From the NCBI GenBank assembly GCA_905178155.1, contig CAJINV010000004.1, forward strand, positions 156,969 through 220,968: DNA of 64,000 nucleotides, in the 5' to 3' direction. Positions 18,361 to 54,486 of the stretch are shown here, in pieces; the first letter of the stretch is position 1; every line of letters begins with the position of its first letter. The notes below the pieces were generated by a model that searched no databases, was not told the DNA's origin, and was given only the letters and a program-made list of their open reading frames with translations. The stretch comes from Amoebophrya sp. A120 (Eukaryota; Protista; Dinoflagellata). Both the position numbers and the translations under genes were made by a program.

Positions 18361-19224
18361 CCAGTGCCCGCAAAACGAAAACCTGGCCTCCGCGTGCGTC
18401 GTGCCGTATATCCTGTTGAAGAACGACACCCCCATCCCATAACTTACACTGTTGCGCATGAACTGTTTGGGCCTCTCATTTTGCAGTCGTGTTTTTCTAG
18501 CTAGAAGACTTCTACCCGCGTCGAAAGTCACACACGGTCGTATCCTGATTCTAATATCGAGAGAAACCAGCCACCCCCCGGCGGAGGCCGCCGGGGAGGG
18601 AGGCTGTTCGGGGAAGGTGTACCGGTGGGGAAGGTGGGGACAAGGGTAGCGCGCCGCTGCGCAGCCAAAAAGGCAGTCGAGGCCGCGCCGGCCGCTCTGA
18701 CGGGTTTGGCCCAGAAAGCGCAGCGCACACGCGCACGCAGCGATACCGGCTCGGCCTGCGTTCTTTGTTTCCGAAAAAAGCAGTGCCCGGGGCCGGAGCT
18801 TGGTGGCCTTTCTTGGGGGGGTAGTCTGTTGGAGGCGTGCGCCCTGAACAAGAGGGCGGAGTGCGTCCAAAAAGTAGCGAACTGGAATAAGCTTAGTGGC
18901 GAGCACGCCGCGAGGCGAGCACGTGCATGCGAAATTGTAGACAACGGGCACAGAAAGACTTTCGCTGCTTTGGCTGCCGCACCTGTTGCCCGCGCGCGGG
19001 CGCTGTGTGAAGTTGCGGCCACCCTAGGTGGCTGCCTACGTTAAGGCGTGTCGCCGCGCCCCCCCCGGGGGACGCAGAGCGGCGCATTCACTTTGAACAG
19101 CCGCCCTGGTCTGTAGAGAGTCAAAAGACTTGCAGACCATAAGCTGTAGGCCCCAGCTGGTTTCGCTCCTACTTTAAGACGCAGGTACTGCGCGCAGGCG
19201 GGCGAACTGCACTGGGGGGGGCGG

Positions 19225-19660
19225 TTGCGGTAGAGATTCAGGGAGAGGGTCCGGGAGAGGGTCCCGGAGAGGGTCCGGGAGAGGGTCGGGGAGAGGTTCG
19301 GAGAGGGTCCCGAAGAGGGTCCGGGAGAGGGTCGGAGAGGTCCCGAGAGGGTCCGCCGAGAGGTAAAATAGAGGTTCCCGGAGAGGATCGGGGTAGAGGG
19401 TCACCTAGAGGGTCGCCCTATACTACGCACCCTCTCTGACCCTCTCGACCCTCTCCCCCTACCCTCTATTTGACCTCTGTCCACCCTCTGCCTACCCTCT
19501 TCGGGCGTATAGCGCCGGTATACGGGCCGATATACTGCCCACCCTCTCCCTGCCCTTTCCTTTACCTCTCGCTTTACCTCTCCCCGACCCTCTATTTTTC
19601 CCCGACCCTCTATTTTACCTCTACGACACCTCTCTCCACCCTCTACCGGAACCTCTCCGG
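19225..19660. repeat. ~12-bp minisatellite (CCGGGAGAGGGT) followed by inverted CCCTCT-rich copies
   Basis: Read directly; similar GAGAGG/CCTCTC arrays at 28535-28900. Confidence 0.8.
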
Positions 19661-19819
19661 CCCCAAAGTTTGCCTTATATAAATATAGTAATTGAAGGTG
19701 AAGAAGCTTCAAGGTAGTATTAGGGAGTGCTAACGCTCCTCATGGAGCTGCGCATGAGAGGTAATTGAGGTTTGTAAATTAAAATTTGGCTGACAGCTAT
19801 GGTGTTGGCTCGCTTCTCC

Positions 19820-20132
19820 TATGAATGTGTCAGGTTTGAAATCGTCAAAGTTGAAATAGTTTGTCATGCATAAAACGGATACCAGTTAGACATACAATTT
19901 GTAGTAGGTGCGTGACAAATTTCCCCGGTCCTGGAAGCGAGTCTGTCATGCGGTTTAGGGCAAAAGAGCCGCCTTCTGTCATGCTAGTTAGCAGTCCAAC
20001 TTTTGACCCTTGCCAAGACTATAGCCTGCCTCCTGTGGGTCCTCTGCAATAGAGTCGCTTTTTGTAATTGTATCGCATTTTATGCATTACAAATTGTTTC
20101 AACTTTGACGATTTCAACCTGACGCTTCCATA
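19820..20132. mobile_element. TIR introner family C (TATGGA/TATGAA-GTCAGG-TCAAAGTTGAAA)
   Basis: TATGAATGTGTCAGGTTTGAAATCGTCAAAGTTGAAA...TTTCAACTTTGACGATTTCAACCTGACGCTTCCATA; TSD TCTCC. Confidence 0.9.
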
Positions 20133-20508: not shown

Positions 20509-23500
20509 ATGTGGAGAGTGTGCAGCTCATTCATCCTGTTTGCCACGCCCGCTGTGGCCTCTATCAAATGCAAAAATGTCATCTGGGTCTGGAAGGTTGG
20601 AACTTGTGATGCTGACTTTATTGGACTCTAAAAAAATAAAAACCTGTACTGCATGACCAGCAAGAGGAGCCTAGTTCGTGCTACGCGGGGACGGCGTTTG
20701 TCATGCGGAGTAGGCATCAGGAAGCCCACTAAAAATCTGCGCTATAGGTCGCGCATCACAGACATCCTCGGCCATGCAAAATTTGCATGACAAACCCGGC
20801 ATCAACATTCCAGACCCAGGCATCAACATTCCAGACCCAGTAGTTCTCTTTTATTTTCTTTCTTCATAAAGAACAAGTCGTTCTCTTCCCTGTGCTGTAC
20901 CAAGGTCTTGTTTCCAGACAAAACACCAGACACTTTTGCAGTTCATAGCCTTTTTGGGGGAGCAATATCGCTGGAGTTCGACGCAGATTACAAAGGGCAT
21001 ATCAAGTGTAAAAATGTCTGGGTCTGGAAGAATGCAACTTGTCATGCTAAATCTGAAGCATGCAAAAATCTGTGTTGCATGATATACCAAAAGTCGTCCA
21101 GTTTTGACCAAGTCGGGAGGCAGTTTCTCATGCAGGATAGGCATGAGAAAGATCGCGCAGAATCTGTCATGCTACGTCCTGCATTCCAGACCTCATGGGT
21201 CATGGAAAAGCTGCATGACAAATCGCGCACTCTTCCAGACCCAGACATTTTTATTTTTGATAGGGCAGCGGGCAGTACTATGATGGAGATCAAAACCAGG
21301 ACGTGGGGGAAGGCATATCCTGCAGAAAAGTACACCCGCACCAGAAAAAAACTGGCAAAATTTGTATGTAGAAGTGCGGTCGCGAAAGTTCTATTCTGGC
21401 GATTTTTTTTTTCGATATCCAGACAGCAAAACGACGGCCGGTCTTCAAGCGCCGTCCGGGCGTGTTTTTTCACAAAAGTTTCAAACTATCAAAGGGCTGG
21501 AGCTTTCTTGGCAAACAAGCCCGGTGGACTTCCTCCGCTCGACAAATCGATGCAGGGGCGTGGGCCGGCAAAAGCATCACCGGTCCTCCTGGGGCGCCCG
21601 CCCGCCGTCTTGATTTCTGGCGGCCTGAGACGCACAGGGCGGGGCGCGAAAAAACTAGAGACGGAAAAAAAACAGCCAGCCCGCACACTGTAGGTCTCAG
21701 CCCGGGCTTTTCCGGTACGCGCTGACTGTCTGACGGCCGAAGGTTTTGCCTTTTAAAACAAAGAAAAAAATGGCGCCCTGCCAAAAAGCGCGAGCGGCGC
21801 TATATGCTATTTGCACGACTTCGGGCGCCCAAGCGGCCGGTCTTGCCCTAGTGGAGGCCCAGGCGGGACCTTGGCATACGGCTGGGATTTGTCTTCTCAA
21901 TGCCAGACGGCCGGAAGCTTTGGCCCGCGAAATTTCTCGGCCGTGCATGGCGTTAGGCGCCATGGCATGGCGGCCATAGTTAGAGGCGGCGCCGTCCGTG
22001 TTTTGGCCCCAAGACAAAAAAAACCGCTATGGCCCCACTATGATTGGCAATCGGTGTTGCGCTAAGTTATCCTGGTCTCGCCCTCAGGAAAAAGGCCGCA
22101 AGAGGTGCAGGCCCTGCCAAGCTTATGCGCAAGAGCAAGCGCGACTAGAGATGGATGCATGTTGCCAAAATAGCGAATTGGCCATGCTGGCAACCATTCA
22201 AAAAAACCAGCTTAGTTGTGGCGATGCAACTCACTCCTTGAAAAAATCATTTTGCTTGTGGGTGTGGGTTTGCTTTTGTGTAGGATAGCCGTCCGACCTG
22301 CAGTTGAATTGTACCAAACTTTTCAACGCTGCGCCGAACCACTGGATAGAGCATGGCAACGCCGATGGGGTATCCCTTGTAATAAAAATGCACGCACCCG
22401 TATCGCACGAAAAAGGTGTTACAGTTACACATTTGTTGGAGGTTCTGCATCACAAAGTTGCTCGACATGGAAAAGAAAACATGTGTTGCGCAGACTATAA
22501 AAGGGAAAACACGCTGCATGAAATGAGAGGGGCAAGCACTACTTCCTGCATGACAGAGGGTGTCTGCCTAGCTTGTCTTCCATCAGAGTGTGCAACTGCA
22601 AAACTTTTTTCTTGCGATAGTCCGCCCGACGCACCGCGTTCTGCTTCTTGCAGAAGAGAAACACTATCTCGAGGGCAAGGTACGAACCCAACATGTGCTA
22701 CAAGAGATTTGCTGCAAACTACGCAAAAAGATTTGGCATGACAAATTAACCAACCTTGTGAGTCAGGGATGTATGACAAGTAATGGCAAGAAGAACCCTC
22801 CACAGCATCGCTGCGTTTGTCGAAGATGATTGCACCAAAAATCTATTAGACCATCATAGCAACTGGCTTGTTCTAAACCAGCATAGGCACAATATGCCCC
22901 GTGTGAGATGTCGCCTTTACAACTGAATGAAACTTGTCATATACCAGTGACCTGCTTTAGATCGTTGAAAAGTGTAGAGTGGGTTCATTTGTGCACTGTA
23001 TCAGGGATACCTGCACCCGGCGGTTGGATATCCAGTGCAAAAATCTGCGATCTGGATGAGGAATGTTGTTAAAATCAGCGTTCTGGTCGGCCGCTACAAC
23101 GAACAGGGACAGTAAGGTCCGGGCATCCGCTTCTTCTATGTGATGCTGTGTTATTCGCCATTGCATGACTTTTGTTTTTCGCCACACAACCCACCATGTT
23201 CTTTCCGGTCCACCATATGAAGTGGCAACGAGTGTGCTTACTTACACCTCGCCGTCAGGTGAGCAAGACTTGCGTCAACAGAATGAGTGTAGTTCTATTT
23301 GTGGTTGTGTGTTGCTCGCCGATCTGTTCTTATATGCTCCTTGCAATCTGTGTGATTTATCTGGTAGACCCACATCTAAGATGAAAAGGCACGCTCCTTA
23401 TGCTAGAAAAGAAAAGCGCTGGCGCATTTGTGTAAGAAACACTGCGCGTAGTTGTGCCGGATTCCTGCGCTTCTTCGTCTTCCTCACATGCAAAATTAAT

Positions 23501-26500
23501 TTGCATGGAAATGCATGCGTATAGCCATAGCGTACGAGACGGGAGCCAGAAAAAAATGCTCTGCCCAACGGACAGCGGGCGCATGTTTGTGATGCGAAAA
23601 ATTGTGTATCTACGAATGGTTTTTATTTATGTGTGATATGGTAATGGTATTATGGGTGTATTTATTTTCCGGAGGCGGGTATGAAATGAGCCCACGGGGA
23701 CGATGTTGAGAACGACTCATGCCAGACGCAGATTTACAATGGAGATTCGCAGCAGGCTATGCAAATAAAAAACCCTTCCCATACCACAAAGAAAAACAAG
23801 TGCGGACGTTTGTCACCTGAGTAGATAGGCCCCAAGGTGGGTGGTGGGCGTCGTTTCCAATCAGATTTGGGATGTCGCTTCGTGGTAGCTGTTATTTCTC
23901 TGCACGGGCCAGATAAGAGACCAGCCAGTCGCGCATGCCGGCGGACGGGACCTTTTTGTTTGGCGGAGGTCCTGCCAGCACGTGGGCTGCTTTCGCAGCC
24001 CGTGCTGCCTTTCCCGGCGCCGGCCTCGGCGTAAATTTGCGCACGCCATGCTTGCAGCGGCCTTGGGAAGGCCCCACCGCATGGAGCGTCCCGCGCGTTG
24101 GCGCCCCGTTTGGCCTGGGTAGCGCGCGCCGGCCGCTCCTTTGCGTTTGCAGAGCTGCGGCAGGTTTTGGCCATGGCCAGGTCAAGCGATCTACTGGGCG
24201 GGATCGGTAGATCGCTTGGTCCGGCCCCCCAGCCCTGCCGCGTGCCTGGCCCCGGCGAAAGAATAGCGCAGGAGGCCTGCGCCAGGCGAGGGTGATCCAG
24301 CCCGCCGACCGTGCGTGCCGGGACGGGGGGCTGCGTGCCCCCTCGCTGGATCGTGTGTGCGTGCGTCTTCGCGCGCGGGGCCCACCCGGGGGGGGGGGGG
24401 CGTTCGCATTGGACCCCGCGGCGGTTTTGGCAGACACGACGCACACCTCTAGCCACCTTGCCAGCCGCCCGCCCGGAGGGAGCAGACTTTGGCCCGTGCG
24501 TGCTTCGGCAGGTACTTACCTGCCTAGCGCCTGCTCCCCGGTGGCGTGCTGGTAGGCGCCTGGCGGGCGGGTGCGCGGGGCGGGCGTGCGTGGCGTTCGT
24601 CCGGCCGTAGCAGTCCCCTCGCCCCTGCCCCCGCCCTTTGGTAGTGTGTTGACCACGCTGCATATTTATAACAAAAAAACCCGCAGTAGGTAGTCCGCCA
24701 CCGCAGCCGGCATGGGATGACTGTCGACGCGCCCGTCTCGCCTTCGGTTCGCCTTCTCCTGCTGCACAAGTTCGATCCGGAAAGGGTTTAGTTTGGGTTT
24801 CAGGGTTTAAGACGCATTTATAACAAAAAGACGACGGCAGGCGGCCCTTTCTGCCCTGCTTCTGGGCTTGGCGGGGGGCGCTGTCTGTGGCTGCGTCGCG
24901 GGGCCCTTCTGCTTCTTTTCCCTCTGCCGCTTGGCGGTAGTTGCTTGCGCTCATTGAAATCGCTGGCAGTGGTTCGCAGGGGGTTGGAAAGGCTCGCCCC
25001 GTTCCCGCCTGGCTGCATATTCTCGTCGTACGTTGAGTGCCTCCCGTAGGTCAGCGCCACGCACCGTGGGCCCCAACGAACCGCCGCCATGCATTGGGTG
25101 TTGGCAGGAGGGCAAGCGCCGCAACATCCTCCAGCTAGCGCGCTTTGGTTGAGGGCCGCCCCCCCTTCACAATGAAAGACCCGAGCGCGCGCTCCGTGTC
25201 GCCAATCTATCAGCGCCTCAAATCTAATCGGCTCGCTGGCCCCGCTATAAGTATGGGGAGGAAAAAGTTTGCACCTTGATGGCCGGTTTCCGCGATGATC
25301 AAAATAAGAAGAAGCAGGGAGGGCTGAAACGACTGACGCGGAGCGACTTGACGAACGGCCAATTTAGCGCATTCGGCGTAACTTACCCCAATCGCGACTC
25401 CGCTTTCACGTTCGACGAATGTGTGAGCGCCTGCCTCTTATCAAATGTAAAAATGTCGGGGTCGGGAAGAGTTGGAACTTGTGGCGCAAACGCTGGACCA
25501 CAGATTTTGGGCGCAAACGCTGGACCACAGAGTTGGAACTTGTGGCGCAAGAAGTTGACAGATTTTGGCGCTCATGTGTTGCATGAGCGCCAAAATCTGT
25601 CAACTTCTTGGCACGAAAGTAGGAAGTTTCTCATGCGGGACAGGCATCATGTGGCGTGCGCAGAACCTGTTGCGCTTTTGCCTGCAACATCAGACGCCAT
25701 TTGCGTGATCCGAAATTTGCATGACAAATCTCCAGCCAACCAAATCTCACAATCTTCCAGACCCAGACACTTTTGCATTTGATACCCCTGGGACCTTGAG
25801 GCAAGTGTGGAGCGGGCAGACAAAACGCAGTCGGAGCCGGCCGAGGTCGGCTGCGTATGAATCTGTCAGGATTGAAATCGTCAAAGTTGAAATGGTTTGC
25901 CATGCATAAAATGCAAGGCATGAAGCGCCTGCCTTGCTGGGATGGCAAGCGAGGCAGATTGTGAGCCTTTTTAGGGTTTGGGATAGAGCTGCTACAGGAG
26001 CATGACAAAAGCGCCCTTCTGTGCCCAAACAGCATGACAAATTGGATTTCGGTGCTCCGAAAATTTGTCATGCGCCGCAGTAGCACAGTCTGTTTATGTA
26101 ATGCGCCGCTTAGGAATTGGTCTTCCAACTGGTATCCATTTTATGCATGACAAATTATTTCAACTTTGTCGATTTCAAACCTGGCGCTTCCATACCGCGA
26201 GGGAATAGTGTATGCCAATGGCGGAGACGACGAGGGCCATTGTTGGCTGAAGCGAAAAGCTTGCTGTGAGTCGGAGAATGAGCAGTCGGGTCTTGATCGG
26301 ACGTTTTCCCCTGTGCCCGCCCTCGCCGGCGACCCACTGACCGCATTGCCGCGTATCTCCGTGCGGATCGATGACGAGTGCAAACAGACGCTGCGGGCTG
26401 GCCTGGGGCTATCCTGTGTAATAACGTCCCCACGCCCCCAGACCCAGTTCTCGCTCACTTTTTTTCACATTTTGAAATCTTCCTGTGCTTTACGTTGGTC

Positions 26501-29500
26501 TCTCCCACAACAAAAGAAGGACACATCAGACATCAGACCCAGCGTCAAGATGACAAATTTGCTTACACCAGTCAAAAAGTTTTTAACCTGATGTATTTCT
26601 TGGCCACGCGACCGACGGGCGTGGCGATCCCTGAGGAGCACGACACACATTCCAATTTCAAAAATATAAAACGAGATGGCATCCTCAGAAAACGGCGCTC
26701 ATGGGATTTGTGCATGAGGAACGTTTATTCTGGGGCGCAGATTTGCGTGACATCAACTCTGGGGCGGGGACGTTTTCGCACAGAATGCGCGCCGTTCTTC
26801 ACCCTCGCAAAAAAGGACGACTTTATGCCATCCTACAGCGGACTTTTTCGGCTTTATGTCCCAAAAACGTCGGGGGTGGCGGCTAACAAAGAGTGCACCA
26901 TTATCATGTGTAAAAACCTCTCCACCCCAGAGTCAAGATGGGATTTTTGCTACACAAGTCAGCAAGTTTTGGCTGTTGCGTATGACAAGCTTTGGTCTCT
27001 AGTATAATAGCGCTGCTTGGCTAGTAGAGCCGCATCACAAATCCAGCTCCCTATCCTGATTAGCGCATGACAAAGTACCAGACAGCATGAGAAAGTGCTG
27101 CTCATGGGGTTGCGCATGAGAAACCTTTTAGGCATGCAGATTTGCGTGACAACTTTGGGGGGGACGTTTTTCCTCAGGATAACCATGTACGAGGACGTCG
27201 GGGTAGAACGTAAAATATCCTGTGCAAAAGTATCGCACTCGTACTGCAGTCATGCATTGCAGATGCTTTTCTTAAAGTAAATCCGCATTCACAAACTTAT
27301 TTTCTCATGCTGAAGAAATTTGTATTTGTAATGCATTTCCATTTGTACGAGGAGTGCGATACTTTTGCGGTTCATATAAAACCGCCAGCGACGCCTTTGC
27401 GGTACTTACCGAATGCATATATGTTATCTGGGTCTGGAAGAGTGTAGACTTGTCATGCAGGAGGTTTTCCATGATCCGTGATGTCTGTGATCGTGATGTA
27501 CGCCCTAGCATCACAGAGCTTTTGATGAGGGCTTCTAGATGCCAATCCCGCATGACAAATGCCCTTTTGGCCTAGAAAAAATTGGGCTCCTGTTGCTGCT
27601 CATGCAATGCAGAGTTTTTTACAATCCAAACGCAGGATGATCACAAGTTCCAGCTTTCCAGACCCAGGAGACATATTTGCGTTTGATAGCACTCCCACTT
27701 CCGCAACAGGTGTTCGCATTAAAGGATGCGACGAATTTATCGCCAGAAAAAAACTGTCTCACTGTAAACTTGTAATGCAGATGAAAATACATCTCACTCG
27801 CACAAGTGTTTGTCGTGCTAGACACAATTATCAAGACGGTGAGTTTTTACCTGCGTAGTCTCCGTTTTCCCTTAGGAACCTTGTACGGCAGATTTTCTCT
27901 GTCATGTAGAACGAACTTGCGATGCAAAACCTGCAAAATCCTATACAGTGAAACGCTTTTTTCTCACGATAGAATACAGCGGCTGTCGGGAATTTCATTA
28001 CAACAGCAGAAGGCTGCTTCGAGTGGTGCTTTCGCAGCAGCAAGTGCGTTGCGTTTACGCTTTTACCCAACATATGAGAGTGCACAATTCCCCCTCTTCC
28101 TCATTTGTCATGCAAAACCCCATATGCAAGTGCTTCCCTGTGGCACTGTTTGCATGACAGATTCCGGAAGGAGCCCAAACAGTACTACACTAGGCGCACA
28201 AATTTGTCATGCGCAGGCTCCACCCACGACGTGTGCTGGTGTTTGTAATATGATTGCTGTTCATCTTCATGGAATACAAACGAGGGGAGTTGGGGGAGTT
28301 GTGCACTGTCATGCAACACCTTTGCCGAATATAGCGACAGCGACCCGAAAATTACGGAAGTCTCGTCAGAGCCGTATGCCTGTAGTGTAAGCAGTGAAAT
28401 TTCTGCGTGCGTCCCAGCCACCCTCTATGGCCCTCTCCGCTGCCAGCTTTACTCGTCCTTGAAGCGGTCGTATGGAACTGTCAGAATTGAAAGTAACAAA
28501 GCTAGAATTACTATCTATTATATTCATGCGAAAAAAGAGGTCTACAGAGGGTAGACGAGAGGTGGCCGAGAGGTCAAAAAGAGGTAAAAAGAGGTCGACA
28601 GAGGTGGGGAGGTGGCGCGGGAGGTCGTCAGGGAGGGTGGCCGAGAGGTGGCGCGGGTATAGCCAGCCGAACCGTTCACCCTAAGGCCGCGCCTATAGGG
28701 ACCAGAGGGGGCCGAGACGGTGCAGGGAGGGCAAGCGAGAGGGGGACAGAGGTGCCGAGAGGTTGCGCGAATAAGGGCGAACCTCTCGCGCACCCTCCTG
28801 GCCACCTCTCGGCCACCTCTGTAGACCTCTACCGGCGAGTATAGCCGGATTATTAGCAACACCTCTCGGGAGAGGTGAAAAAGAGGGCCCGCGAGAGGGT
28901 AAAAAAGACCGGAATCCGCCCGGTACAGGGCCGATCTTCTGGGGGGGTTTTGCATCGCGTGGGGCCGCACCCTCTCGCGCCGGCCTCTCGCGCCGCCCTC
29001 CGTCCCGCGCTACCCTCTTGCGCCAACAGTTTCCGCCGAGAATCCATTTGGGCGAGGGCGGAAGGGCGGCCCACAATTGGCAGCGTGGTTCCCGCTCTGC
29101 TTCGGCACCTACGCCCAGGCGGCTACTGTTCGCGCCCAAGCCTCGCTGCAGTTGCTCCCTGCGCATAGCGCCGAAAGGCGCGGGAAGCGCGCAGGAGGCC
29201 CTGCGGGCTGACATGGCGCAAGGCGGCGCCAGAAATTTGGTCGGTCTGTCACAGTGTGGTCCTGAAATTTGGCAGGGCTCTGGTGCTGCGGTCCGATCCG
29301 CAAATAGTTATGCCCCAGCGCAACAGCCTTGCGCCCCGGCGGCAGCCGGGGCATGGCTGGCAATTTCTCATGCATAAAATCTATACCAGTCGGACCCACA
29401 GTTTCCAATCGGCGCATGACAAATTTTCCTGGCCTCTGCAGCAAGTCTTTTTATGCTGTTTAGGGCAAGAGGGCTCCTCCCTGTCATGCTAGTCAGCAGC

Positions 29501-44500: not shown

Positions 44501-47500
44501 TGAGAAATAAAATCGAATTGAGTTTTTAGTAATTGCCACTCAGACCTCGATTTTCAGCCTTGCAACTGCTCGACATGGGAGATTAAACAGCTGAAGGATG
44601 TAGACGGTAACCCCAAAACGGACGCGGGTGGAAATGAGCTAAAAGAGACCGTTACAACAGGCGATGTCGATTTATGGGACTCTCAAACGTTACATTCTCA
44701 ACTGTTATATGAATTACTATCTAAACTGCAGCAGCTGGTCAAAAATGCATGCGAGGGGTATGTTCGGGGGCATGTTCGGGGGTGTGTCAGGGGTATGCAA
44801 ATGGCAGTCAGTCACGACCTGAATACAAATTTTTGGCGAAAAAGCAGAAGGTGGGGTATAAACATACCCCAGACACACCCCAGACACACCCCAGACATAC
44901 CCCAGACAGACCCCCGAACACACCCCAGGCAAAAAGTCCGAACATACCCCAGACACACCCCGGACACACCCCGGGCAGACTTTCGGACACACCCCGGACA
45001 GACTTTCGGACACACCCCGGCCAAACTTTCGGACTTTGTCACGCGAGGTTTGGCCCCGAAGTCCAGTCTGTCACGCGTCGCGAGACGGACCGCGCGGCCA
45101 CGGGGCGAAAGCCCTAGGCCAGCGCGGGGACTTGGTCCCCGCGTCATGGCCTGCAAGTGCTTCCCGGACACCGTGCGGCCACGGGGCGAAAGCCCTAGGC
45201 CAGCGCGGGGACTCGGCCCCCGCGTCATGGCCTAGGGGTCAGCTGCAAGCGCTTCCCGGACACCGTGCGGCCACGGGGCGAAAGCCCTAGGCCAGCGCGG
45301 GGACTCGGTCCCCGCGTCATGGCCTAGGGGTCAGCTGCAAGTGCTTCCCGGACACCGTGCGGCCACGGGGCGAAAGCCCTAGGCCAGCGCGGGGACTCGG
45401 TCCCCGTGCCATGGCCTAGGGGCCAGCAGCAAGTCCTTCCGTTCCCGGACACCGTGCGGCCACGGGGCGAAAGCCCTAGGCCAGCGCGGGGACTCGGTCC
45501 TCGCGTCATGGCCTAGGGGTCAGCTGCAAGTGCTTCCCGGACACCGTGCGGCCACGGGGCGAAAACCCTAGGCCAGCGCGGGGACTCGGTCCCCGCGTCA
45601 TGGCCTAGGGGTCAGCTGCAAGCGCTTCCCGGACACCGTGCGGCCACGGGGCGAATGCCCTAGGCCAGCGCGGGGACCCGGTCCCCGCGTCATGGCTTAG
45701 GGGCTAGCTACGAACACTCTCCGGACACCACGCCCCGCGGTCAAGAAAGCACGGGGCGAAGGAAATCCCTAGGGCAGAAGTGTGGGGATTCTGTCGCCGC
45801 GTCATGACTTGCGGGCCGGCTCGCTCCAGACCCGCACCCGGCGCCAGTTTCTTCTTTTCTTACTTTCAATTATCTTTGCGCGCGGCAGGTGAACGGACCT
45901 AGTGCGCGCAAGCAAGGGAGCCGCGTCCGCAGGCCCGTCGCGGGTCAGTGAATGCAAGGCGCGCCGAGATACCTAGCTGCAGGCGACCTGCCTGCCCAGT
46001 GCCACCGCGCAGGCAGGCAAATGCCGGAAGGTCGCCGCACGGGGACTCTGTCACTGTCCCCGTGCTCGGACCTTGTTTGTAATGCAAGAACCGCAACAGT
46101 CAAAGGGGCAAGCTTGGTGCTTTCGCATCACAGATTTGGCACAGATTTAGATGCTGCCTAGAAGGCCTCCGGAGATTTATTGTCATGCCAAGCAGCTTGA
46201 TGATCTTGCCGCTTACGGTAGTTTTGCATGACAAATGCATGTAACAGTTGAGAATTATGTAACGGTTGAGAACTCCATACGATTTTGTGGATCCGCCTGC
46301 CTTCATCTATGACGACAATCTGGACAAGGTCAGCGGTCCCTTCGCGCTTGCAAATCGCGAGGTTGTTATTGGTATCCTGGGTAAAAGTATTGTACTCGTA
46401 GTTATCGCAATCATGCATTGCAAATTTCCATTCCAAGGTAAAACAGCATAATATATTTACATTTGTCATGCTGGGTGCCCGAATTTGTGATGCGGTTTCT
46501 ACTAGTGCGATGCTTTTGCAATGCATAATTGGCGCACGCTACACCGCCCGGCTTTTTAAATTGGGGTACGAAGATATGAGAGTGCACAACTTCCCCTCCC
46601 CCTCATTTGTGTTGCATGAACAGCAAAACAAGCGCTGGCAGTAAAGATGCAACTTTTGCATGACAAATTCCTCGGTGAACGTAGTGCTCCTGATTTGGCA
46701 GCTTTCGGAATCTGTCATGCAAAGAGTGCTAACAGGCAGAAGGTAGATTTGGGATTTTGCATGACAAATGAGGGGGAGGAGGAGCTGCGCACTGTCATAG
46801 AAGATCTCGGGGGCGTGGAAATGCAGCCGTTCGATCCGAGCTCGGGAATGGTATCCTGTGCAAATAAAGTATCGTATTCGTATATATGCAAGTCTTGCAT
46901 TACAAATTTTTTTCTCAAGGTAAATCCGCATTACAAATTTTAATTCTCACGCTGAGGAAATTTGTCATGCATTTATACGAGTGCGATACTTGTTTTGCAG
47001 TTCATAAATGGTGAATCATCGCGATCTATAAAATGCAAATATGTCTTGGTCTGCAAGAGTGCATTTTGATTTTTGTCAGGCAGGGTTTCCATGGCCCACG
47101 AGGTCTGGCATCATGTGGGACAGAGCGTGACAGATCCTGTGAGAGTAAGTTCTATCATGCCAATCCTGTATGAGAAACTGCCTCTCGTCGTCGATTAGGT
47201 CAAAAGTGGACAGCTTTCGGTAATCATGCAACACAGATTTTTACATGCTTCAGTTGTAGCATGACAAGTTGCTTTGTTCCAGACCCAGACATACTTACAT
47301 CTGATACGATCCTGCTCGGAAGAATTACGACGCCATATCAACAGTCAATTTCCCGTACACGTACAAATGCGGTCTCTGCATGACAAAAATTGGCTTTGGT
47401 CCTAGTTTAGCATGGCAAGTTTTACTCTCGAAATTGGTGAAGTTTGTGATGCATCCTGTACATGTACGGAAAATTTGTATTGTATACGCCAATCACATAT

Positions 47501-50500
47501 ACAACGGCAGTCCCGACATCGGGTGCGTGCGGCTTTCGAACACAGACATTCGGCCGACCCCCATATCAAATGCAAATATGCCACCTAGAGGGTCTGGAAG
47601 ATTGCTAGGTTTGCCATGCAGGCTTTCCATGACCACCCACGAGGGCTGGCATAAGCATGCCCACGCCGCTAGCATGACAGAAGATTCCGTGAGGTCTCTA
47701 CCATCCCTCTTCTGCATGATGAGAAACCGCCTCTAAGCTTGATGTTCTTTCAAAAGGGGGCAACTTTTGGCAATCATGCAACACAAGAATTTTTTTTTCA
47801 CGATCTAGGGTGGTTCCAGGTTCGAGATTTAGCATGACAAGTTACACTCTATTATTCGAGACCCAGATCGATATTTGCAATGCATACCCCGGGATCTCGC
47901 GCCACTTCACCTATGGCAGCGCGCAGGATAAAGCGCTTGACGGTGGAGGTGGCAACGGCAGGCGGCGGTATCACAACCCGATGCAGTATCGTGTGGGCTT
48001 CAATGACCTGCTCTATCCTGTTTAAAAACGTCCCAGCCCGCCCAGAGGTGCCACAGCAAACTTCACGACATGTTATGAACGGACAAAATACAACTTGACG
48101 TTGACCCCAGTTGTAATAGCATATACTGTTACCAGAATGAAACGAGCGACCTACGAGAATGACGCAGCAAACGGGGCGCCACCCGCTTCCAACTTTTCCC
48201 GCTCCGGACGGGGTAGAAGCTGCACTTTTCACGGGGCTTCTGCCCGTTTTTTCGCGCAAAGCTGCTTGCTTTTACACGCGGTTTTTCTCCACTGACTCGA
48301 GCGGTCGGGTGGAGAAAAACCGCATTTCAAATTCGCAAAACCGGCTGGATTTGGATGCGGTTTTTCTCCACGTAGGAGAAAAACCGCATCACAAATTCGC
48401 AAATTTCGATGCGATCTTTCTCCCCCCGAGGTCTCGGGCGGAGAAAGACCGCACTACAAAAGACCCGAGCTCCGGTTGTTCTCCGCATTACAAATGCGGA
48501 AAACCCGGGCTCTCGGCATTACAAATCCCCCTTTCGCCACAAGCGGCTGCTACCGCACCGTCGTGCGTAACCTTTTGCGCGATTCTATCATCAAGCTACA
48601 AAATAATTCACATTCCCCCACACACGTATCGATAGCATCGGGCATTAGGTTATGCTGCATGGTATCGCTGCGTGCGAATTTCCCTTGCAGCCATACCATG
48701 CGGCATTAGGTTATGCGCGAACTGTGGTTGTCTTTTTCTCCCCCGTTGGGCGTTGTGCAGGTTCTTTTCCCCCCCAAACACGACCGGACTGCGGGAAAAG
48801 TTGTGGCTTAGGGTGGAGCCGCAAGTTTTCGATCGTGTAATAGATGAGCCCCGCCCAACTTGTTTCGTCCGCCTGCTTGTGCTTCTCGGATATACAAACC
48901 ACTGCCAGTAGGATGGGATATACAAACCACTGCACGCCCCAGCCCGCTCAGAGTTGCCACAGCAGACTTCAGCTTCGCGACCTGTGGCCACGACATCTAC
49001 CCTGGTAGATTCTTTTCGTGGAGTGATTGGAGGGGGTTCTCCCCCCGTTCTGTTTTGTATATGGGCTGGCAGATCCCTAGAAGCTAATGCCTGGAGTTGT
49101 TGGTCTTCCGCCCCTTAGAGTGGGGCTGTAGAAGAAGTCAACGCGGACGGAGTCCACCGTTTGCGGGATTGGATGGTTTGGGGCTGGATTAACTTCTTTT
49201 CTAGAAGTTTTGTACTAGGTAGACTGCGGTCGTTCATCTTGCGTAGGAATGAATGGTAGCAAGCGTGCTCTGAGTGCACCAGTGCCATTCCGCCTGGAGG
49301 GCGCTTCCCGGCGGGGAAGAGTGTGCTAGGAGGTTTGCGCTAGAATGACTAGCAGCAAGGGCAGTGCTCTGAGTGCACCAGTGCCATTCCGCCTGGAGGG
49401 CGCTTCCCAGCGGGGAAGAAAGTGGTAGGAAGAATTCGGCGGGAAGAATGGCAGCAAGCGTGCTCTGAGTGCGCCTGGGGGTCTGGTTTGTGACCTCCCA
49501 AACTTTCTGTGGTATTTCTTTTTGGCCTTGCGAGAGGTAGTGCGGATCCCTGCAAGTATGTGGGGCCGTGCGGGTAGCGTCCATGCTGCAGCCGGGTTGT
49601 GGCTGGCCTGCCGAGTCCTTACGCACTTCTATTGGGAGTGCTGCTGTATGTTGGGGTCTGGCGTCCGTACCTTTCGAGGCTATCCTGGGGATCAGGACCG
49701 CCCCTTCCTTGTCGCGCTCGCGCAACTCTTAGTTCTTCTACACCAGGGGGGCTCTGCTCTGTCTTCGGTCTCGCCTTGCTTTGGGAACAGGGGTCGTCTG
49801 GCACAGCAAACTTCCGAAGCGCAGGGGTTTCAAAACGTGTGGCGCAGGGGTTTCAAAACGTCCCAGCCCGCCCAGAGTTGCCAAAGCAAACTTCGCGACA
49901 TGTGGCCACGAGGACACAGAGTTGGTTCGGCGACAGCTTCTCTTTTACTTCCATCGAAGTTTCAAACTTTTCCGTGCTTTAATTTGGTCTTTTCGACGTT
50001 GACTTTTCAGCACATAGTTGTAGCGACGCAGAGTTGCATTTACAGAAAAAGTTGTAGTGCTAGTGCGCATCTCCATGATGAGAGCCATCCCTTCTCGTCC
50101 CACTGTGTATCGGTATCTGTAGTGCTGTAGACAGGATAAGCGCATGGCTTTGTGGTGCGTAGTCCTACTTGCTAAACTTGTTAGTACAAAAGGAAAAACT
50201 GTCATGTGTGAATCGCAAAGCTTCTCGATTTGTGTTGCAAAGTGCGCAACTTGACTCTTAGTTGGGGGCGTTTTTACACAGGATATGCTCGAAGATAGTG
50301 CTAACCTTGACGATTGGAAGCGGGCGTCGATCATGGCTGCGGACGTGGGGGCCCACAAAAAGAGAACCATGGACAGCTCGGACACTAATCCGAATTACAA
50401 AACGTCAGCCGACGAAACCGACGTATTTGGAAAGGGGTTGCTGGAAACAGGAGGTTACACAGATACAGGCGACAACGACCAGCTTGTCGAGGCTGCTAAT

Positions 50501-53500
50501 GGCGTCTGCGTCTCGTATCGCATGTGTTTTGCCCTGTGCGCTGCGTTCAAGGACTGCTTCGGCTTCGTGTATGACAGGAACGCCCACATGCCGTATCAAA
50601 AGGAAAAATCCCCCCTCCACATATCAGAACGAAGTTTCTGATGCTGGATTTCGGTACACAAATCTGTCTTGCAGTAGAGAACTGCAGACATATGCCAAGC
50701 CCGATTCGAGAGGTTTTGGCGTAGGCGCCTAGCATGGCAAACGTCTAGGCTGTATCTGTAAGCCCAACAGCATCACAAACCGCCTGCATAACGCGCCGGA
50801 CTCTCTGGGTTCGCCTTCTTGCAACACAGATAGGATTTGTGGTCACAAATCTGCCCCACAAATTTTCAGACGAGTGCGTTTTCCATATGGGGAGGGGGGA
50901 TTTTTCCTCACAATATGCCGGGGGGGCACCCCTATGATTACAAAGGGATCGCCGTCGACGGAAGTGACTTCGACTCCGGAGGGCATATGAAATGCAAAAA
51001 TGTCATCTGGGTCTGGAAGAGTGCCAGACTTGTCATGCAGGTTTTCCATGACCCATGAGGTCTGGCATGTAGGACATAGCATGACAGATCCTGTGAGAGT
51101 TCCATAATCATGCCTATCCTGCATGTGGAACTGCCTCTCGATTAGGTCAAAAGTGGACAGCTTTTGGTAATCATGCAACACAGATCTTCACATGATTCAG
51201 ATTCAGCATGACAAGTTGCTTTGTTCCAGACCCAGACGCTTTTACATTTGATAGGGCAGTATCAAATGCAAAAAGTAATATTATGTCTGGGTCAACATCT
51301 GGAAGAATCACAATCAGCGTGCGTAAGTTTGTCAGGCGGCATCTTCTGCATCTTTTGGATTCCACAGCTGTTTTGGAATGCACCGCGCGAATAAAGCATA
51401 ATAGAAAATATGCTCAGGTCTGTTGATGCCTATCCAGGAACAACAGGAGAAAATCCCTTTTTGCAGTGCAAAAAGAAATGGACAACTTTTGGCGTTTATG
51501 CAACACGAATTTTTGCATTGTCCCGACTTTCCATGACAAGCTCGCATTCTTCTAGAGGACGTAGTAGACTACACATTTGCAATGCATAGGCAGGGGGACC
51601 ACACCATCCCCCCGGCGGAGCTAAATCGCGGAGATGGCAGGGAGGCCCCGAACTTCCGCCCGGAAGACATGCAGACTTACGGAGGCGATCCCATATCAAA
51701 TGCAATTTAGCGAAGATCTGGGTCATCTGGGAGAATGCACTTGTCTGTCATGCACGTTTTTTTGCATGACCACCCGTGACTGAGCGTGATCATGTCATCT
51801 GTGATGCATGCCATAGTACCACCGATTTTCTGAGGACTTCCTGATGCAAATCCCGCCTGAGAAAAAAATTTCTGTCCGCAACGTAAAAAAAACTGGACTC
51901 ATCTTGCTGCTCATGCAATACAGATCCTGTTAGAATCCAAGCGCGGCATTACAGGATGAGATCCTTCCAGACTCAGACATATTTGTTGTGCATAACCCGT
52001 TTGCGGTGGCAACATGGACCATATTACAGTGCACAACTCCCCCTCCCCCTCATTTGTATTGCATGAACGGCAAGACAAACACCCCCACCTGTGCAGCCTG
52101 TGCATAGCAAGTTCATGCGCCTAGTGTGCGTACTGTTTGGGCCGCTTCCGGAATCTGTCACGCAAACAATACCATGCAGCAGCGCTTGGGTTTGGTATTC
52201 TGCATGACAAATGAGGGGGAGGCGGGGGAGTTGTGCACCCTCATAGACAAGGACAAGTTCGGGAATGAGACGCGGAGCTGCTACTTTCTGGGTCAAGAGT
52301 TTTATGAACTGCAAATATGCTTTGGTCTGGAAAAATCTGCAGGACTTGTCATGCAGGTTTTTCATGACCCATGGCATGCGGTCCTCTGGTAGACATGCAT
52401 ACTGGCATTGCAGATTCTGTGTAGTTGACCTCTCTACTAGTATGCCTCTCCTGCATGAGAATAAACTGCCTCGCAACTGAGTCAAAAGTGGACAGCTTTT
52501 GGTACTCAGGCAACTTCTACACAGATTTTGGCGCGAGCATGAGAAGTTGCAACCTCCCCGACCGCCCAAACGTATCTGCAGTTGATAAGTTTGCGGACTA
52601 CACAAACTGGCTATGAATTGCAAAAGTATCGTACTTGTACTAGTAGCAATTGCATTACAAATTGGCTCAGCGCTGGAGATTGAATTTGTAAAGTGCTATA
52701 TTTACCTTGAGAAATAAGAGATTTGTCATGCATATTTCTTTGCGATGAGCACGAGTGCGATACTTTTGCACAGGATATTGGCCGGTCGGCCACGACGATC
52801 AGCGGGAAAGCGACATACCAAAAGGAAAAATCCACCCTCCTCAGATCAAAACGGAAATTTGTGATGCAGGATTTGTGTACACAAATCAAATCTGTCTTGC
52901 TGTAGGGTACTGCACGCAGATCGCAAGCCTAGGCAGGGGCCGTTTGATGTACGTGCTTAGCATGGCAAACGTCGGCCCTGTAGGCCTTACAGCATGACAA
53001 ATCGCCTGCGAAACGTGGCGGAGTCTCTGCGTTTGCCTTCCTGCAAGACAGATGACGGGATCTATGGCGATGGCCACAAATCTGCGTCACAAATTTCAGA
53101 AGGATGCGCTTTCAATTTGGGGAAGGTGGATCTTTCCGTGCAATGCGACAATCTCAGCACGGCGTGCCCTGAAGGTCAACAGACCGACTCAAGCAACCAA
53201 TTCTGCTACGCTTTCAATGAAGCAACCGACTCAAGCGTCGATCCCGATGGCGATCCCGATGCCGATTGCCCCACCTGCAAGTTTAAGGATGACACGGAAT
53301 GGGCCAACGGAAGCGCAGCGCCCTGGAACAACGACCGCGATGACAGGACAAGACTTCAGTTCAAGCACACAGGTAATGATGGGAAGCCCACCTACAAAAG
53401 CGCAACAGCTATGGGGGCGTAATCAGGAACAGGTTCGACAAAGTTGAAATAACTTGCAAGGCGTAAAACAGCTTTCAGTTGGAACGAAGCCCAAGGTCTA

Positions 53501-54486
53501 CGGGGCGCATGAAAAATTTTGGTAGCACCTAAACTGATAGATTCAGTTTGTCATGCTGTTTGGGGAGAGAGAGCATCTTTTGTCATGCTAAATTGAGCGG
53601 CTGTGTCTCTATCTAATCAGTGGTCTCCAACCCACCCAAACAGGCTCACAATGGTCGTCGTTTGCTTGCCCTCATAATCATACGTCCTATATTTATAAAT
53701 GCAATGTCCAGGAGCAGGACATTGGATTTTATGCACGAACAAGACAAGTGCAAGTTAGTAGTCATTTCAACTTTATTTTCAAAATTCCATTTCGACCCTC
53801 ACACTTCCATAAAAGCAGAACCGAGCGACTTCGGTATCAAATGTAAAAATGTCTGGGTCTGGAAGAATGCAGTTTGTCATGCGAAATCTGAAGCATGCAA
53901 AAATCTGTGTTGCATTATTACCAAAACTCGTCCAGTTTTGACCAAGTCGGGAGGCAGTTTCTCATGCAGGATAGGCATGAGAAAGATCGCACAGAATCTG
54001 TCATGCTAGGTCCTGCATTCCAGACCTCACGGGTCATGGAAAATCTGCATGACAAATCGCGCATTCTTCCAGACCCAGACATTTTTACACTTGATATTCG
54101 GCCTCCTGTACCAAAATTACGCGGAGAATTTTGACACCCTGATTATGACCCCAACGTGCCGAATATGACAGTGCACAACTCCCCCTCGGTCTCATTTCTC
54201 ATGCAGAATACCCAACCCACGCTTTGCCTCCTGTCACTATTATGCATGACAAGTTCCGGTAGCCCAAATACCACTATACTTCAGTGCAAATTCGTCATGC
54301 AAAACCGGCATTCTTGCTGATGCTTGCATTGCCGTTCATGCTATACAAATGAGGGGGAGGGGGAGTTGTGCACTGGTATACCGAAACGCGGCCCAGAATC
54401 ACGCCCAGCTCTCGCTTCTGATCGACAAAGTGATAGACGCGAACACCGACGCTACAGGCGTGGTACAGACTACCCTTGCCACCTGA
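20509..54486 (+). CDS. Secreted Cys-rich PAN/Apple-domain protein, ~1,400 aa, 58 exons and 57 TIR introns
   Basis: Signal peptide MWRVCSSFILFATPAVA. PAN-like motifs: FDECVSACL..GCEGIVY..GHCWLK, AEGCFEWCFRSSKCVAFTL, TECAKVCTQLVPRCVGFTY, KECALQCFREVACNAF..CCVLF, MCFALCAAFKDCFGFVY. Ends ..GVVQTTLAT* (TGA 54484-54486). Elements removed, each plus 5 nt (plus 3 nt for 44022): 20562-20947, 21000-21262, 21316-22287, 22401-22619, 22665-23009, 23029-23745, 23758-25281, 25439-25784, 25856-26194, 26410-26787, 26902-27181, 27216-27376, 27407-27688, 27738-27971, 28073-28313, 28471-29632, 29677-29942, 30008-31606, 31651-33477, 33604-33865, 33939-35115, 35122-37285, 37361-37612, 37850-38159, 38218-38482, 38576-38911, 38958-39211, 39253-39512, 39547-39876, 39924-40185, 40243-41409, 41544-41763, 41789-42013, 42082-42385, 42554-42882, 42932-43256, 43338-43589, 43642-43964, 44022-46279, 46373-46527, 46575-46799, 46852-47006, 47027-47306, 47336-47486, 47564-47886, 48014-50285, 50594-50915, 50986-51253, 51260-51588, 51694-51994, 52022-52245, 52303-52587, 52612-52777, 52816-53145, 53410-53811, 53835-54096, 54164-54380. 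A hand count leaves 4,212 nt with no internal stop. Confidence 0.9.
21000..21262. mobile_element. Family A introner, young subfamily (near-identical to 53835-54096 and 56416-56677)
   Basis: TSD GGGCA; shared body AATCTGAAGCATG..CCAGTTTTGACCAAGTCGGGAGG. Confidence 0.95.
23758..25281. mobile_element. Degenerate introner with GC-rich insert (1.5 kb)
   Basis: TATGCAAATAAAAAACCCTTCCCATAC...GTATGGGGAGGAAAAAGTTTGCA; removal restores the frame. Confidence 0.65.
25856..26194. mobile_element. Family C introner beside a PAN cysteine codon
   Basis: Flanks CTGCG/CCGCG; TIR TATGAATCTGTCAGG / CCTGGCGCTTCCATA. Confidence 0.9.
27216..27376. mobile_element. Family B introner
   Basis: TATCCTGTGCAAAAGTATCGCACTC...GAGTGCGATACTTTTGCGGTTCATA; TSD TAAAA. 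Confidence 0.95.
28073..28313. mobile_element. Family E introner (TATGAGAGTGCACAA); also 6182, 41789, 46575, 52022, 54164
   Basis: TATGAGAGTGCACAATTCCCC...GGGGAGTTGTGCACTGTCATG; TSD CAACA. Confidence 0.9.
28471..29632. mobile_element. Family C introner with ~0.85-kb GC-rich insert
   Basis: Family C ends; flanks GGTCG/GGCGG. Confidence 0.8.
30008..31606. mobile_element. Family B introner with ~1.45-kb insert
   Basis: Intact family B ends; perfect TSD AATGC. Confidence 0.9.
31651..33477. mobile_element. Family C introner with ~1.5-kb insert
   Basis: TAGGGATGTGTCAGG...CCTGACGCTTCCATA; perfect TSD AGCCG. Confidence 0.9.
34045..34840. mobile_element. Dispersed ~0.8-kb insert; second copy at 48074-~48770
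   Basis: Both copies begin TATGAACGGACA and are colinear (GAATGAAACGAGCGACCTA, CTCGAGCGGTCGGGTGGAGAAAA, CACAAATTCGCAAA). Confidence 0.85.
35217..37218. mobile_element. 2-kb non-autonomous TIR element nested in family B introner 35122-37285
   Basis: 21-bp perfect inverted repeat CGGTACGCGCTGAGGCCTAGA (35221-35241 / 37194-37214); internal GGGGGCCCCC arrays. Confidence 0.8.
40483..41324. mobile_element. MITE-like element nested in introner 40243-41409
   Basis: TGAGCCAGTA...TACTGGTTCA flanked by CATG on both sides; subterminal CCAGTACACGAAGGG / CCCTTCGTGTACTGG. Confidence 0.75.
41544..41763. mobile_element. Family G introner (TATCACAGGAAAAAAGTG); also 22401, 27738, 60879
   Basis: TATCACAGGAAAAAAGTGTTACAGTT...AACTGTAACACTTTTATTTTCTTGTGATA; TSD CACCA. 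Confidence 0.9.
43642..43964. mobile_element. Family D introner (TATCAAAAGGAAAAATCCCCCCTCCCC); also 38576, 40243, 42554, 42932, 50594, 52816
   Basis: Long TIR; perfect TSD ATTCG. Confidence 0.95.
44860..45030. repeat. ~11-12-bp minisatellite CCC(A/G)GACACAC, with inverted copies at 44755-44795
   Basis: Read directly. Confidence 0.8.
45090..45725. repeat. 92-bp GC-rich tandem repeat, ~7 units, inside introner 44022-46279
   Basis: Unit CCCGGACACCGTGCGGCCACGGGGCGAAAGCCCTAGGCCAGCGCGGGGACTCGGTCCCCGCGTCATGGCCTAGGGGTCAGCTGCAAGTGCTT; period measured 45255 to 45347. Confidence 0.95.
48014..50285. mobile_element. Family F introner with two successive inserts
   Basis: TATCCTGTTTAAAAACG...CGTTTTTACACAGGATA; perfect TSD TGCTC; the subterminal ~50 bp is present three times. 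Confidence 0.9.

Follow-up and report, generated by a model that had tools for sequence, protein, structure and literature searches.

Fifty-seven transposon-like introns in a single gene of Amoebophrya sp. A120 are removed in one fixed register

How are introns removed precisely when they are transposon copies without canonical splice signals, and what sets the place of the cut? This question is raised by a stretch of 64,000 nucleotides (nt) of Amoebophrya sp. A120 (G000:C4:156969-220968, in an assembly of 115.5 Mb), referred to here as the window, and above all by its gene GSA120T00015471001, which is interrupted by 57 elements with TAT...ATA-type ends. We find one fixed register for each element: the intron consists of 1 nt, the element (TAT...ATA) and 4 nt. 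The elements are present in genomic DNA and absent from the mRNA, and their removal takes place at the RNA level and is exact. The phenomenon, the intron class, the TAT-type ends, the direct repeats, the undetected U1 small nuclear RNA (snRNA) and the gene model are already public; what is added here beyond the publications is the uniform 1 + 4 register, which reproduces both proteins deposited for this locus.

The gene was identified with one exon as query (50291-50593, 101 codons), searched against protein representatives. The exon matched a 1412-amino-acid (aa) protein at 100% identity, CAD7943987.1 / GSA120T00015471001 ('unnamed protein product [Amoebophrya sp. A120]'), and a 1600-aa protein at 52%, CAD7943988.1 / GSA120T00015472001, a neighbouring 'unnamed protein product' of Amoebophrya sp. 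A120. CAD7943987.1 maps exactly to 20509-54486: 55 blocks account for 1408 residues and the rest are split codons. A single intron solves 53 of the 54 block junctions, and the last requires a 7-nt micro-exon. The main features of the gene, including its coding sequence (CDS), are the following.

20509-54486, forward strand: gene GSA120T00015471001 (CAD7943987.1), ATG to stop, 58 exons, 4239-nt CDS, 1412 aa
23750-23756, forward strand: 7-nt micro-exon cagcagg, giving QQ in ...GGWQQGF...
35120-35120, forward strand: 1-nt exon that the fixed register leaves between elements 20 and 21; a single 3351-nt intron in the deposited model, same mRNA
50290-50592, forward strand: largest exon, 303 nt, carrying the best PAN_4 match and used as the search query
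51258-51258, forward strand: 1-nt exon that the fixed register leaves between elements 48 and 49; a single 607-nt intron in the deposited model, same mRNA

The annotation gives this gene 55 introns, two of which are in fact abutting element pairs, 1 nt apart (33939-35115 with 35122-37285, and 50986-51253 with 51260-51588), so that the elements number 57. Their median length is 304 nt (range 151-2272). Introns make up 29,739 of the 33,978 nt of the gene (87.5%), with 74.4 coding nt per element and an insertion density of ~13 introns per kb CDS; the published genome mean for A120 is 1.42 introns per kb CDS (PMC7789003). An earlier, sequence-only reading of this DNA had arrived at 57 elements, a stop-free protein of ~1,400 aa, about 88% element DNA and one insertion per 74 coding nt, all of which the mapping of the deposited protein bears out; the junction peptide it singled out, EVACNAFAR, is present in CAD7943987.1. 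It had also described five PAN-like modules. For these the Pfam matches are marginal, PAN_4 at 27.1 bits (cut-off 27) and PAN_2 at 22.3 bits (cut-off 21.1); four clear copies of the CxxxC...CxGF motif, conserved in both paralogs, were counted. The N-terminus is hydrophobic, and the product is probably a secreted PAN-like protein. In the fixed register 27, 19 and 11 of the 57 insertions are in phases 0, 1 and 2, respectively, an apparent mild excess of phase 0.

The register could be determined because many of the 5-base-pair (bp) flanks are imperfect repeats: where the two flanks of an element differ, the protein sequence reveals which copy has survived. Deletion of [TAT-1 .. ATA+4] at 57 of 57 elements yields a 4239-nt open reading frame (ORF) whose translation is identical to CAD7943987.1 (0 differences), while registers 0, 1, 2, 3 and 5 produce 18, 15, 11, 5 and 9 residue differences. 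For the paralog CAD7943988.1, register 4 again gives 0 differences and the other registers 8-35. There are 101 junctions in the two genes (55 here and 46 in the paralog), of which 53 are informative; register 4 is excluded by none of them, register 3 by 16 and register 5 by 17, and the chance of such agreement under a random register is ~1e-16. Thus the mRNA keeps positions 1-4 of the upstream copy of the duplication and position 5 of the downstream copy. That deletion of an element plus 5 nt restores the frame had been claimed from the sequence and is true of all 57; the +3 then called for at one junction was not reproduced.

The place of the cut is not set by flanking sequence, direct repeat, family or orientation. 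Each of the five large families has members in both orientations, and all obey the register, as do elements of up to 2.3 kb, abutting pairs, decayed ends (TAC, TAG, ATG, ATC, AGA, ACA) and composites with unrelated ends. Neither the cut sites nor the duplication favour particular bases, as the sequence-only reading had noted for the latter; the first exon base is A in 19 cases, C in 21, G in 27 and T in 14. In the true register GT-AG ends are found in 1 of 55 introns of this gene and in 2 of 103 with the paralog, where ~1.6 are expected by chance. Removal without GT-AG, GC-AG or AT-AC ends is borne out, and the junctions, which that reading allowed might map to GT-AG sites, do so only at the chance rate. 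For the duplications TAAAA (27216) and CTATC (42932) sliding of the junction confirms that no position yields GT-AG, GC-AG or AT-AC. Decay of the ends is asymmetric: the 5' UA is kept in 102 of 103 introns, and the 3' end tolerates ATG, ATC, AGA and ACA.

The 57 elements are listed below. Family orientations (+/-) are relative; two flanks are written upstream/downstream where they are unequal; TSD (target site duplication) denotes an exact repeat; m is the number of flank bases kept from the upstream copy, m=4 being four upstream and one downstream.

Element 1, 20562-20947: family A (+), TAT/ATA, flanks GCCTC/GCCTT
Element 2, 21000-21262: family A (+), TSD GGGCA
Element 3, 21316-22287: singleton, flanks AGGCA/GCCGT, repeat gone; register restricted to m=3-4
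Element 4, 22371-23002: composite with nested element 22401-22619, TAT/ATC, flanks TGGGG/AGGGA
Element 5, 23029-23745: singleton, TAT/AGA, flanks TTGGA/TTCGC; m=4 uniquely
Element 6, 23758-25281: composite, TAT/ATG, flanks CAGGC/GCCGG
Element 7, 25439-25784: singleton, flanks CCTCT/CCCCT
Element 8, 25856-26194: family B (+), flanks CTGCG/CCGCG
Element 9, 26410-26787: singleton, TAT/ATG, flanks GGGGC/CGCGC
Element 10, 26902-27181: singleton, TSD ACCAT
Element 11, 27216-27376: family D (+), TSD TAAAA; no canonical ends on sliding; RNA fold z = -6.4
Element 12, 27407-27688: family A (-), TAC/ATA, flanks GTACT/GCACT
Element 13, 27738-27971: singleton, flanks GAATT/GAATA; m=5 excluded
Element 14, 28073-28313: family E (+), TAT/ATG, TSD CAACA
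Element 15, 28471-29632: family B (-), flanks GGTCG/GGCGG; m=4-5 only
Element 16, 29677-29942: family A (+), flanks CGAAG/CGACG; m=4-5 only
Element 17, 30008-31606: family D (+), 1599 nt with inserts, TSD AATGC
Element 18, 31651-33477: family B (+), TAG/ATA, TSD AGCCG
Element 19, 33604-33865: family A (-), TSD GAACT
Element 20, 33939-35115: singleton, TAC/ATA; abuts element 21
Element 21, 35122-37285: family D (-), TSD ACTGT
Element 22, 37361-37612: family A (+), TSD GGGCA
Element 23, 37850-38159: family B (+), flanks GCCTC/GGCTC
Element 24, 38218-38482: family A (-), perfect 31-bp terminal inverted repeat (TIR), TSD GAGGA
Element 25, 38576-38911: family C (+), flanks GCGAA/GCGCT; m=4 uniquely
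Element 26, 38958-39211: family A (-), TSD GCGCA
Element 27, 39253-39512: family A (+), TSD ATCGT
Element 28, 39547-39876: family B (-), flanks GATGA/GACGA
Element 29, 39924-40185: family A (-), TSD GACGG
Element 30, 40243-41409: family C (+), 1167 nt, TSD AGGCG
Element 31, 41544-41763: family F, TSD CACCA
Element 32, 41789-42013: family E (+), TSD AGGGC
Element 33, 42082-42385: family B (-), TSD TGAGG; sole GT-AG intron of the gene in the true register
Element 34, 42554-42882: family C (-), flanks ATACC/ATTCC
Element 35, 42932-43256: family C (-), TSD CTATC; no canonical ends on sliding; RNA fold z = -7.2
Element 36, 43338-43589: family A (+), TSD TGCAA; junction peptide EVACN|AFAR
Element 37, 43642-43964: family C (+), TSD ATTCG
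Element 38, 44022-44575: singleton, degenerate 3' end ACA, flanks GAGGA/TGGGA
Element 39, 44673-46279: singleton, 1607 nt, TSD CGATT
Element 40, 46373-46527: family D (+), TSD ATTGG
Element 41, 46575-46799: family E (-), TSD GAAGA
Element 42, 46852-47006: family D (+), TSD AATGG
Element 43, 47027-47306: family A (-), TSD CGATC
Element 44, 47336-47486: singleton, 151 nt, TSD CGCCA
Element 45, 47564-47886: family A (-), flanks CCCCA/CCCCG; m=5 excluded
Element 46, 48014-50285: singleton, 2272 nt, TSD TGCTC
Element 47, 50594-50915: family C (+), TSD TGCCG
Element 48, 50986-51253: family A (-), TSD GGGCA; abuts element 49
Element 49, 51260-51588: singleton, TSD GGCAG
Element 50, 51694-51994: family A (-), flanks TCCCA/ACCCG; weak terminal pairing
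Element 51, 52022-52245: family E (-), flanks GACCA/GACAA; m=4-5 only
Element 52, 52303-52587: family A (-), TSD AGTTT
Element 53, 52612-52777: family D (-), flanks CTGGC/TTGGC
Element 54, 52816-53145: family C (+), TAC/ATG, TSD CGACA
Element 55, 53410-53811: family B (-), flanks ACAGC/AAAGC; weak terminal pairing
Element 56, 53835-54096: family A (+), TSD TTCGG
Element 57, 54164-54380: family E (+), TSD CCGAA

Chaining of exons by rule, scored on TAT/ATA ends, TIR score and TSD match with an open frame demanded, was correct only for 39218-44154 (11 junctions) and 46287-51394 (9 junctions). It took spurious paths elsewhere and was dropped as a full gene model after the deposited protein was found. 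No complete path emerged because ends of the same family cross-pair, ends and repeats are degenerate, and the gene contains a micro-exon and 1-nt exons.

Evidence from RNA comes from a comparison with reads and contigs over 38180-44170. In run X5, labelled 'RNA?', a 2513-nt contig aligns to 38482-38574, 41410-41538 and 42385-42551, the three pieces being separated by 196 and 82 letters of the contig. These correspond to 1815-1907, 2104-2232 and 2315-2481 of the model mRNA, where the gaps are exactly 196 and 82 over nine junctions; the exons bridged in the gaps are 20-63 nt long, too short for listing. The ends of the pieces agree with register 4 at 38574|38916, and the spacing of the contig alone predicts the end of element 25 at 38911, where the sequence reads ...GCGATA. 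Unique intron DNA has depth 0 in X5. The unique interior of element 30, at depth 0 in this RNA run, has a depth of ~180 or more in run X1, which is evidently genomic, with contigs up to 95 kb.

The elements themselves share a common design. By blastn they form families of 17, 7, 7, 6, 5 and 2 members with 13 singletons, in agreement with the at least seven TIR families first seen in the sequence. The 5' end is TAT in 53 of 57 (TAC in three, TAG in one) and the 3' end ATA in 50 (ATG in four, the others ATC, AGA and ACA); the earlier description of all elements as TAT...ATA thus applies exactly at both ends to 47 only. A 5-bp duplication had likewise been ascribed to every element. The repeat is still exact in 34 of 57, 47 show one mismatch or none, and in a few it is essentially absent (e.g. 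21316-22287, AGGCA/GCCGT). The terminal 15 nt are conserved, with the consensus TAT[CG]NA[AG]TG[CG]AAAA over 81 elements, common to otherwise unrelated families. Pairing between the termini is 100% at positions 1-3, ~60% at 4-7 and 80-93% at 8-13. In the median, 16 of the first 20 positions are paired and the duplex energy is -31 kcal/mol; about six of 57 duplexes are weak. Whole elements fold far better than shuffled sequences (z = -6.4 for the element at 27216 and -7.2 for that at 42932). Around six introns are composites with ends from different elements and weak terminal complementarity, among them 22371-23002, 23758-25281, 51694-51994, 53410-53811 and 44022-44575. It is the element's own conserved ends, TAT[CG]NA[AG]TG[CG]AAAA and its complement, usually pairing as a hairpin, that set the place of the cut, at a polarity-specific offset of 1 and 4 nt.

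The same families extend beyond the gene. A first look across the genome gave at least 2712 candidates for the family A element at 38218-38482, and identity was 86-91% in the 40 scored. A strict scan of the window, requiring an exact 5-bp repeat and at least 15 of 24 TIR matches, finds 38 elements, some of them outside the gene, at 5735-9278, 18188-20132, 56045 and 60879. TIRs, a duplication of fixed length without consensus and many dispersed copies are the hallmarks of cut-and-paste TIR transposons, and the elements are non-autonomous 'introner elements', resembling miniature inverted-repeat transposable elements (MITEs), that make 5-bp target duplications. Members with exact 5-bp duplications flank the gene at 5735-9278, 18188-20132 and 56045-56357, presumably within adjacent genes or between genes. 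Run X9, environmental DNA from an estuary (metagenome, 2025), contains about 5% of the sampled words of the window, probably from copies of the elements in this Amoebophrya strain or a related one.

These introns belong to a class described from the same organism, and the gene model comes from the same project. Farhat et al. 2021 (BMC Biol, PMC7789003) report that >60% of A120 introns are non-canonical, without a terminal signature, and that 29,850 repeated introns make up 17% of the genome. The A120 introner elements are described there as having inverted repeats of 8-20 nt, TAT followed after ~7 nt by AAA, and direct repeats of 3-5 nt at their borders. U1 and the minor-spliceosome snRNAs (U12, U6atac) went undetected in that study, U2 was present, and an alternate splicing mechanism was proposed (PMC7789003). 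All features of that class recur here: the organism, non-canonical RNA-supported ends, inverted repeats, the TAT-N~7-AAA start, direct repeats and genome-wide families. That study analysed introns of 40-1000 nt, and one of its figure legends calls the place of the border with respect to the hairpin variable or says that it 'remains unknown' (PMC7789003). In the present genes imperfect duplications locate the border in 101 of 101 junctions, 1 nt ahead of the element and 4 nt past its end, and the rule extends to abutting pairs, composites and elements as long as 2.3 kb. Gozashti et al. 2025 (PNAS, PMC12130899) show that diverse introners make tens of introns in a single A120 gene (Fig. 2D); their focus is transposon classification, and the text available to us has nothing on the splice register. 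We found no paper that establishes the mechanism of A120 introner removal.

Better-known intron classes fit less well. U2-type GT-AG/GC-AG introns are set apart by the chance frequency of GT-AG given above, and U12-type introns by the fact that only some families start TATCCT, the consensus being TAT[CG]NA with a free base before TAT. The introners of Micromonas and Aureococcus (Huff et al. 2016, via PMC11282704) are likewise non-autonomous elements with TIRs and TSDs, spliced out with one copy of the duplication so that the frame is restored; as cited there, they carry or co-opt canonical GT and AG, whereas GT-AG occurs here only by chance.

What machine, then, removes the elements? Our tentative choice, held with somewhat less than even confidence and slightly preferred over a nuclease-ligase system, is the cell's own U2-type spliceosome in a remodelled form. 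Such a spliceosome would recognise N|UAU(C/G) as its 5' site and find the 3' cut by measuring from the ...AUA end, with the terminal helix helping to bring the element ends together. In favour of this reading, the 5' end N|UAU(C/G) is similar to a /GUAUG site at its positions +2 to +5, the decay of the ends is asymmetric, poorly pairing composites are still removed in register, and the U6 snRNA is intact. U6 was found at G000:C1:322202-322307 and at least seven other places (at least 8 copies, all at 106 bits), with the canonical ACAGAGA box and AGC triad preserved. Furthermore, 83 of 89 spliceosomal proteins have been found, and 15% of the GT-AG introns of A120 share the repeat organisation of the introners (Farhat 2021, PMC7789003). 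A precedent is provided by the MITE-derived introns of Fritillaria borealis, which have non-canonical ends and an evolved major spliceosome (Henriet et al. 2019, via PMC7789003, PMC11282704); those introns are reported to have preferred terminal dinucleotides, whereas here the terminal bases are free and conservation lies at +2 to +4 and -7 to -5.

Several points weigh against a remodelled spliceosome. The first and last bases of the introns are unconstrained, and known spliceosomes require G+1/G-1 or A+1/C-1 for the second catalytic step. A 3' cut fixed 4 nt from the end of the helix, without AG, is more suggestive of a nuclease of the ruler type. Neither a branch point nor a lariat nor a need for a polypyrimidine tract is known for these introns. 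Their nearest counterparts, the nonconventional introns of Euglena, leave non-lariat circles (PMC11282704). U1, U2, U5, U12 and U6atac were not found, a blank that is uninformative, since ~45 of thousands of candidates were scored and the published U2 was missed as well. Finally, the register rests on one deposited annotation and one contig, probably from the same project's RNA data, and the raw-read RNA runs X10 and X11 gave 6 and 0 reads on the compared region and thus no coverage of the gene.

A dedicated non-spliceosomal system is a credible contender that we rank slightly lower. An endonuclease would act at the closed end of the hairpin (UAU/AUA and the 15-nt termini), cutting 1 nt 5' and 4 nt 3', and an RNA ligase of the RtcB or Trl1 type would join the exons, as in tRNA, HAC1/XBP1 and archaeal bulge-helix-bulge splicing. 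It is favoured by the fixed, asymmetric register, which is counted from the ends of the element and makes no demand on the bases at either cut; removal independent of orientation, strong hairpins and GT-AG at chance frequency also favour it. The nonconventional introns of euglenids (Milanowski 2014/2016; Guminska 2018; Nomura et al. 2025, PMC12501133) follow a comparable code: they too lack GT-AG, have paired ends, TSD-like border repeats and a suspected MITE origin, and are cut at fixed, unequal distances from a paired motif (N3-CDG ... CHG-N5-6|R), with a 3-nt spacer before and 5-6 nt after the paired CAG/CTG. If the two outer A-U pairs were counted as spacer, the Amoebophrya geometry would be 3 and 6 nt. 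The introns described here nevertheless fall outside the euglenid class, with which they share the logic: their ends are N1-TAT ... ATA-N4, the spacers are 1 and 4, the purine preferred at the first exon base in Euglena has no counterpart, and the lineages are unrelated. Circular products, which favour a nuclease and ligase, have been shown in Euglena only (PMC11282704). Against a dedicated system, it has no candidate enzyme; about six of 57 introns have unrelated ends with weak complementarity and are yet removed in register; and the asymmetry of tolerated mutations would be unexpected if the helix alone were recognised. A nearly complete spliceosome with a canonical U6 exists, moreover, and the same repeats occur in the 15% of canonical A120 introns already mentioned. 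The sequence-only reading had proposed just such a dedicated machinery; precise removal and non-canonical ends stand, and that it would be distinct from the spliceosome is a hypothesis.

A third explanation, excision from transcribed copies at the DNA level, with an mRNA colinear with a rearranged template, is very improbable. The model would be the internal eliminated sequences (IESs) of ciliates: in Paramecium these TA-bounded, TIR-bearing, transposon-derived sequences lie in coding sequence and are removed exactly from the DNA by a domesticated transposase in the somatic nucleus. The elements do resemble these textbook IESs, and many short tail-to-head joints of elements are present in the DNA run X1, in which short contigs join 38482 to 38958, 39547, 39924, 40243 and 43338. 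The sides of these joints, between repeated termini, measure only 24-29 nt, and the joints are most likely assembly-graph paths through those termini, although they may be tandem or circular element DNA. Here, however, the DNA keeps the elements and the RNA is without them: the assembled genome contains all 57, and X1 contigs at normal single-copy depth (~42-49x) cross exon/element borders. Pieces in X5 that contain elements with the flanks of other loci fit unspliced precursors, and to our knowledge Amoebophrya has no germline/soma split. That the exon chain is an annotation artefact and the locus a dead, transposon-riddled gene, as the extreme element load and the two raw-read runs without coverage might suggest, is hardly credible in view of a 4239-nt frame open through 57 deletions, a colinear paralog with conserved Cys motifs and an RNA contig with exactly the predicted exon spacing.

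The paralog shows how such a load may have built up. This tandem copy begins within the window, downstream of the first gene:

60072-64000, forward strand: start of paralog GSA120T00015472001 (CAD7943988.1, 1600 aa), continuing to G000:C4:267765

This gene extends over 50.7 kb, is interrupted by at least 47 similar introns and obeys the same register; a micro-exon in a 7.7-kb gap has 469 solutions, and its junction was excluded from the counts. The two proteins are 54% identical and colinear over 1307 aligned residues. Intron positions coincide within one residue in 6 of 54 cases, with ~4.8 expected by chance; both genes were therefore loaded independently after the duplication. Only 10 of 46 duplications are exact in the paralog, and its introns are still spliced in register; the greater decay of these repeats suggests older insertions. 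Tolerance of exonic insertion, as claimed from the sequence of the one gene, is thus borne out by 57 elements here and at least 47, at other positions, in the paralog. Since removal is exact, insertion into an exon should be near neutral, which would explain the load of introns.

No mobiliser of the elements was identified in a genome search for a cognate autonomous element with Pfam rve, which gave 15 hits, five loci being examined. Only one of these (L022, G000:C1:15330547-15338898) has introner-type ends around an integrase. As an autonomous element this candidate (L022:248-8599) was rejected: it is actually a Copia-like long terminal repeat (LTR) retrotransposon (TSD GACGA, LTRs at 348-571 and 8320-8541, an ORF with rve and RVT_2) nested in a 158-nt family D introner. 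In this genome an 'integrase element' flanked by TIRs can thus be the product of nesting and need not be an autonomous DNA transposon. An 8405-nt intron of the paralog (L005:1899-10000 with L008:1-298) holds a 776-aa ORF without a Pfam match (L005:7346-9676) and a 390-aa ORF with a CCCH zinc finger (L005:5334-6506). No transposase domain was found in the ORFs of this intron, and they may represent a nested gene or a large element.

This is among the strangest intron systems known, in which ~45% of A120 introns are transposon copies removed without a canonical splice signal. The locus is a compact natural test bed, since 57 elements of at least seven families, in both orientations, with abutting pairs, composites and decayed ends, are present in one transcript, and the paralog adds at least 47 independent insertions. 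The 1 + 4 register turns borders that were 'unknown or variable' into a precise, falsifiable rule. From it follow predictions for each junction, for the sequence that a circular or lariat product would have and for the point mutations that should shift or abolish removal. On a bolder analysis, which we regard as possible and rather doubtful, the rule would amount to a 'splicing code' that ignores sequence and measures from the ends of a UAU/AUA-closed terminal motif (1 nt before, 4 nt after), mechanistically of the same kind as that of Euglena. It would then represent a second, non-spliceosomal or radically re-wired route of nuclear splicing that had arisen or survived in two unrelated protist lineages and made exons safe landing sites for transposons.

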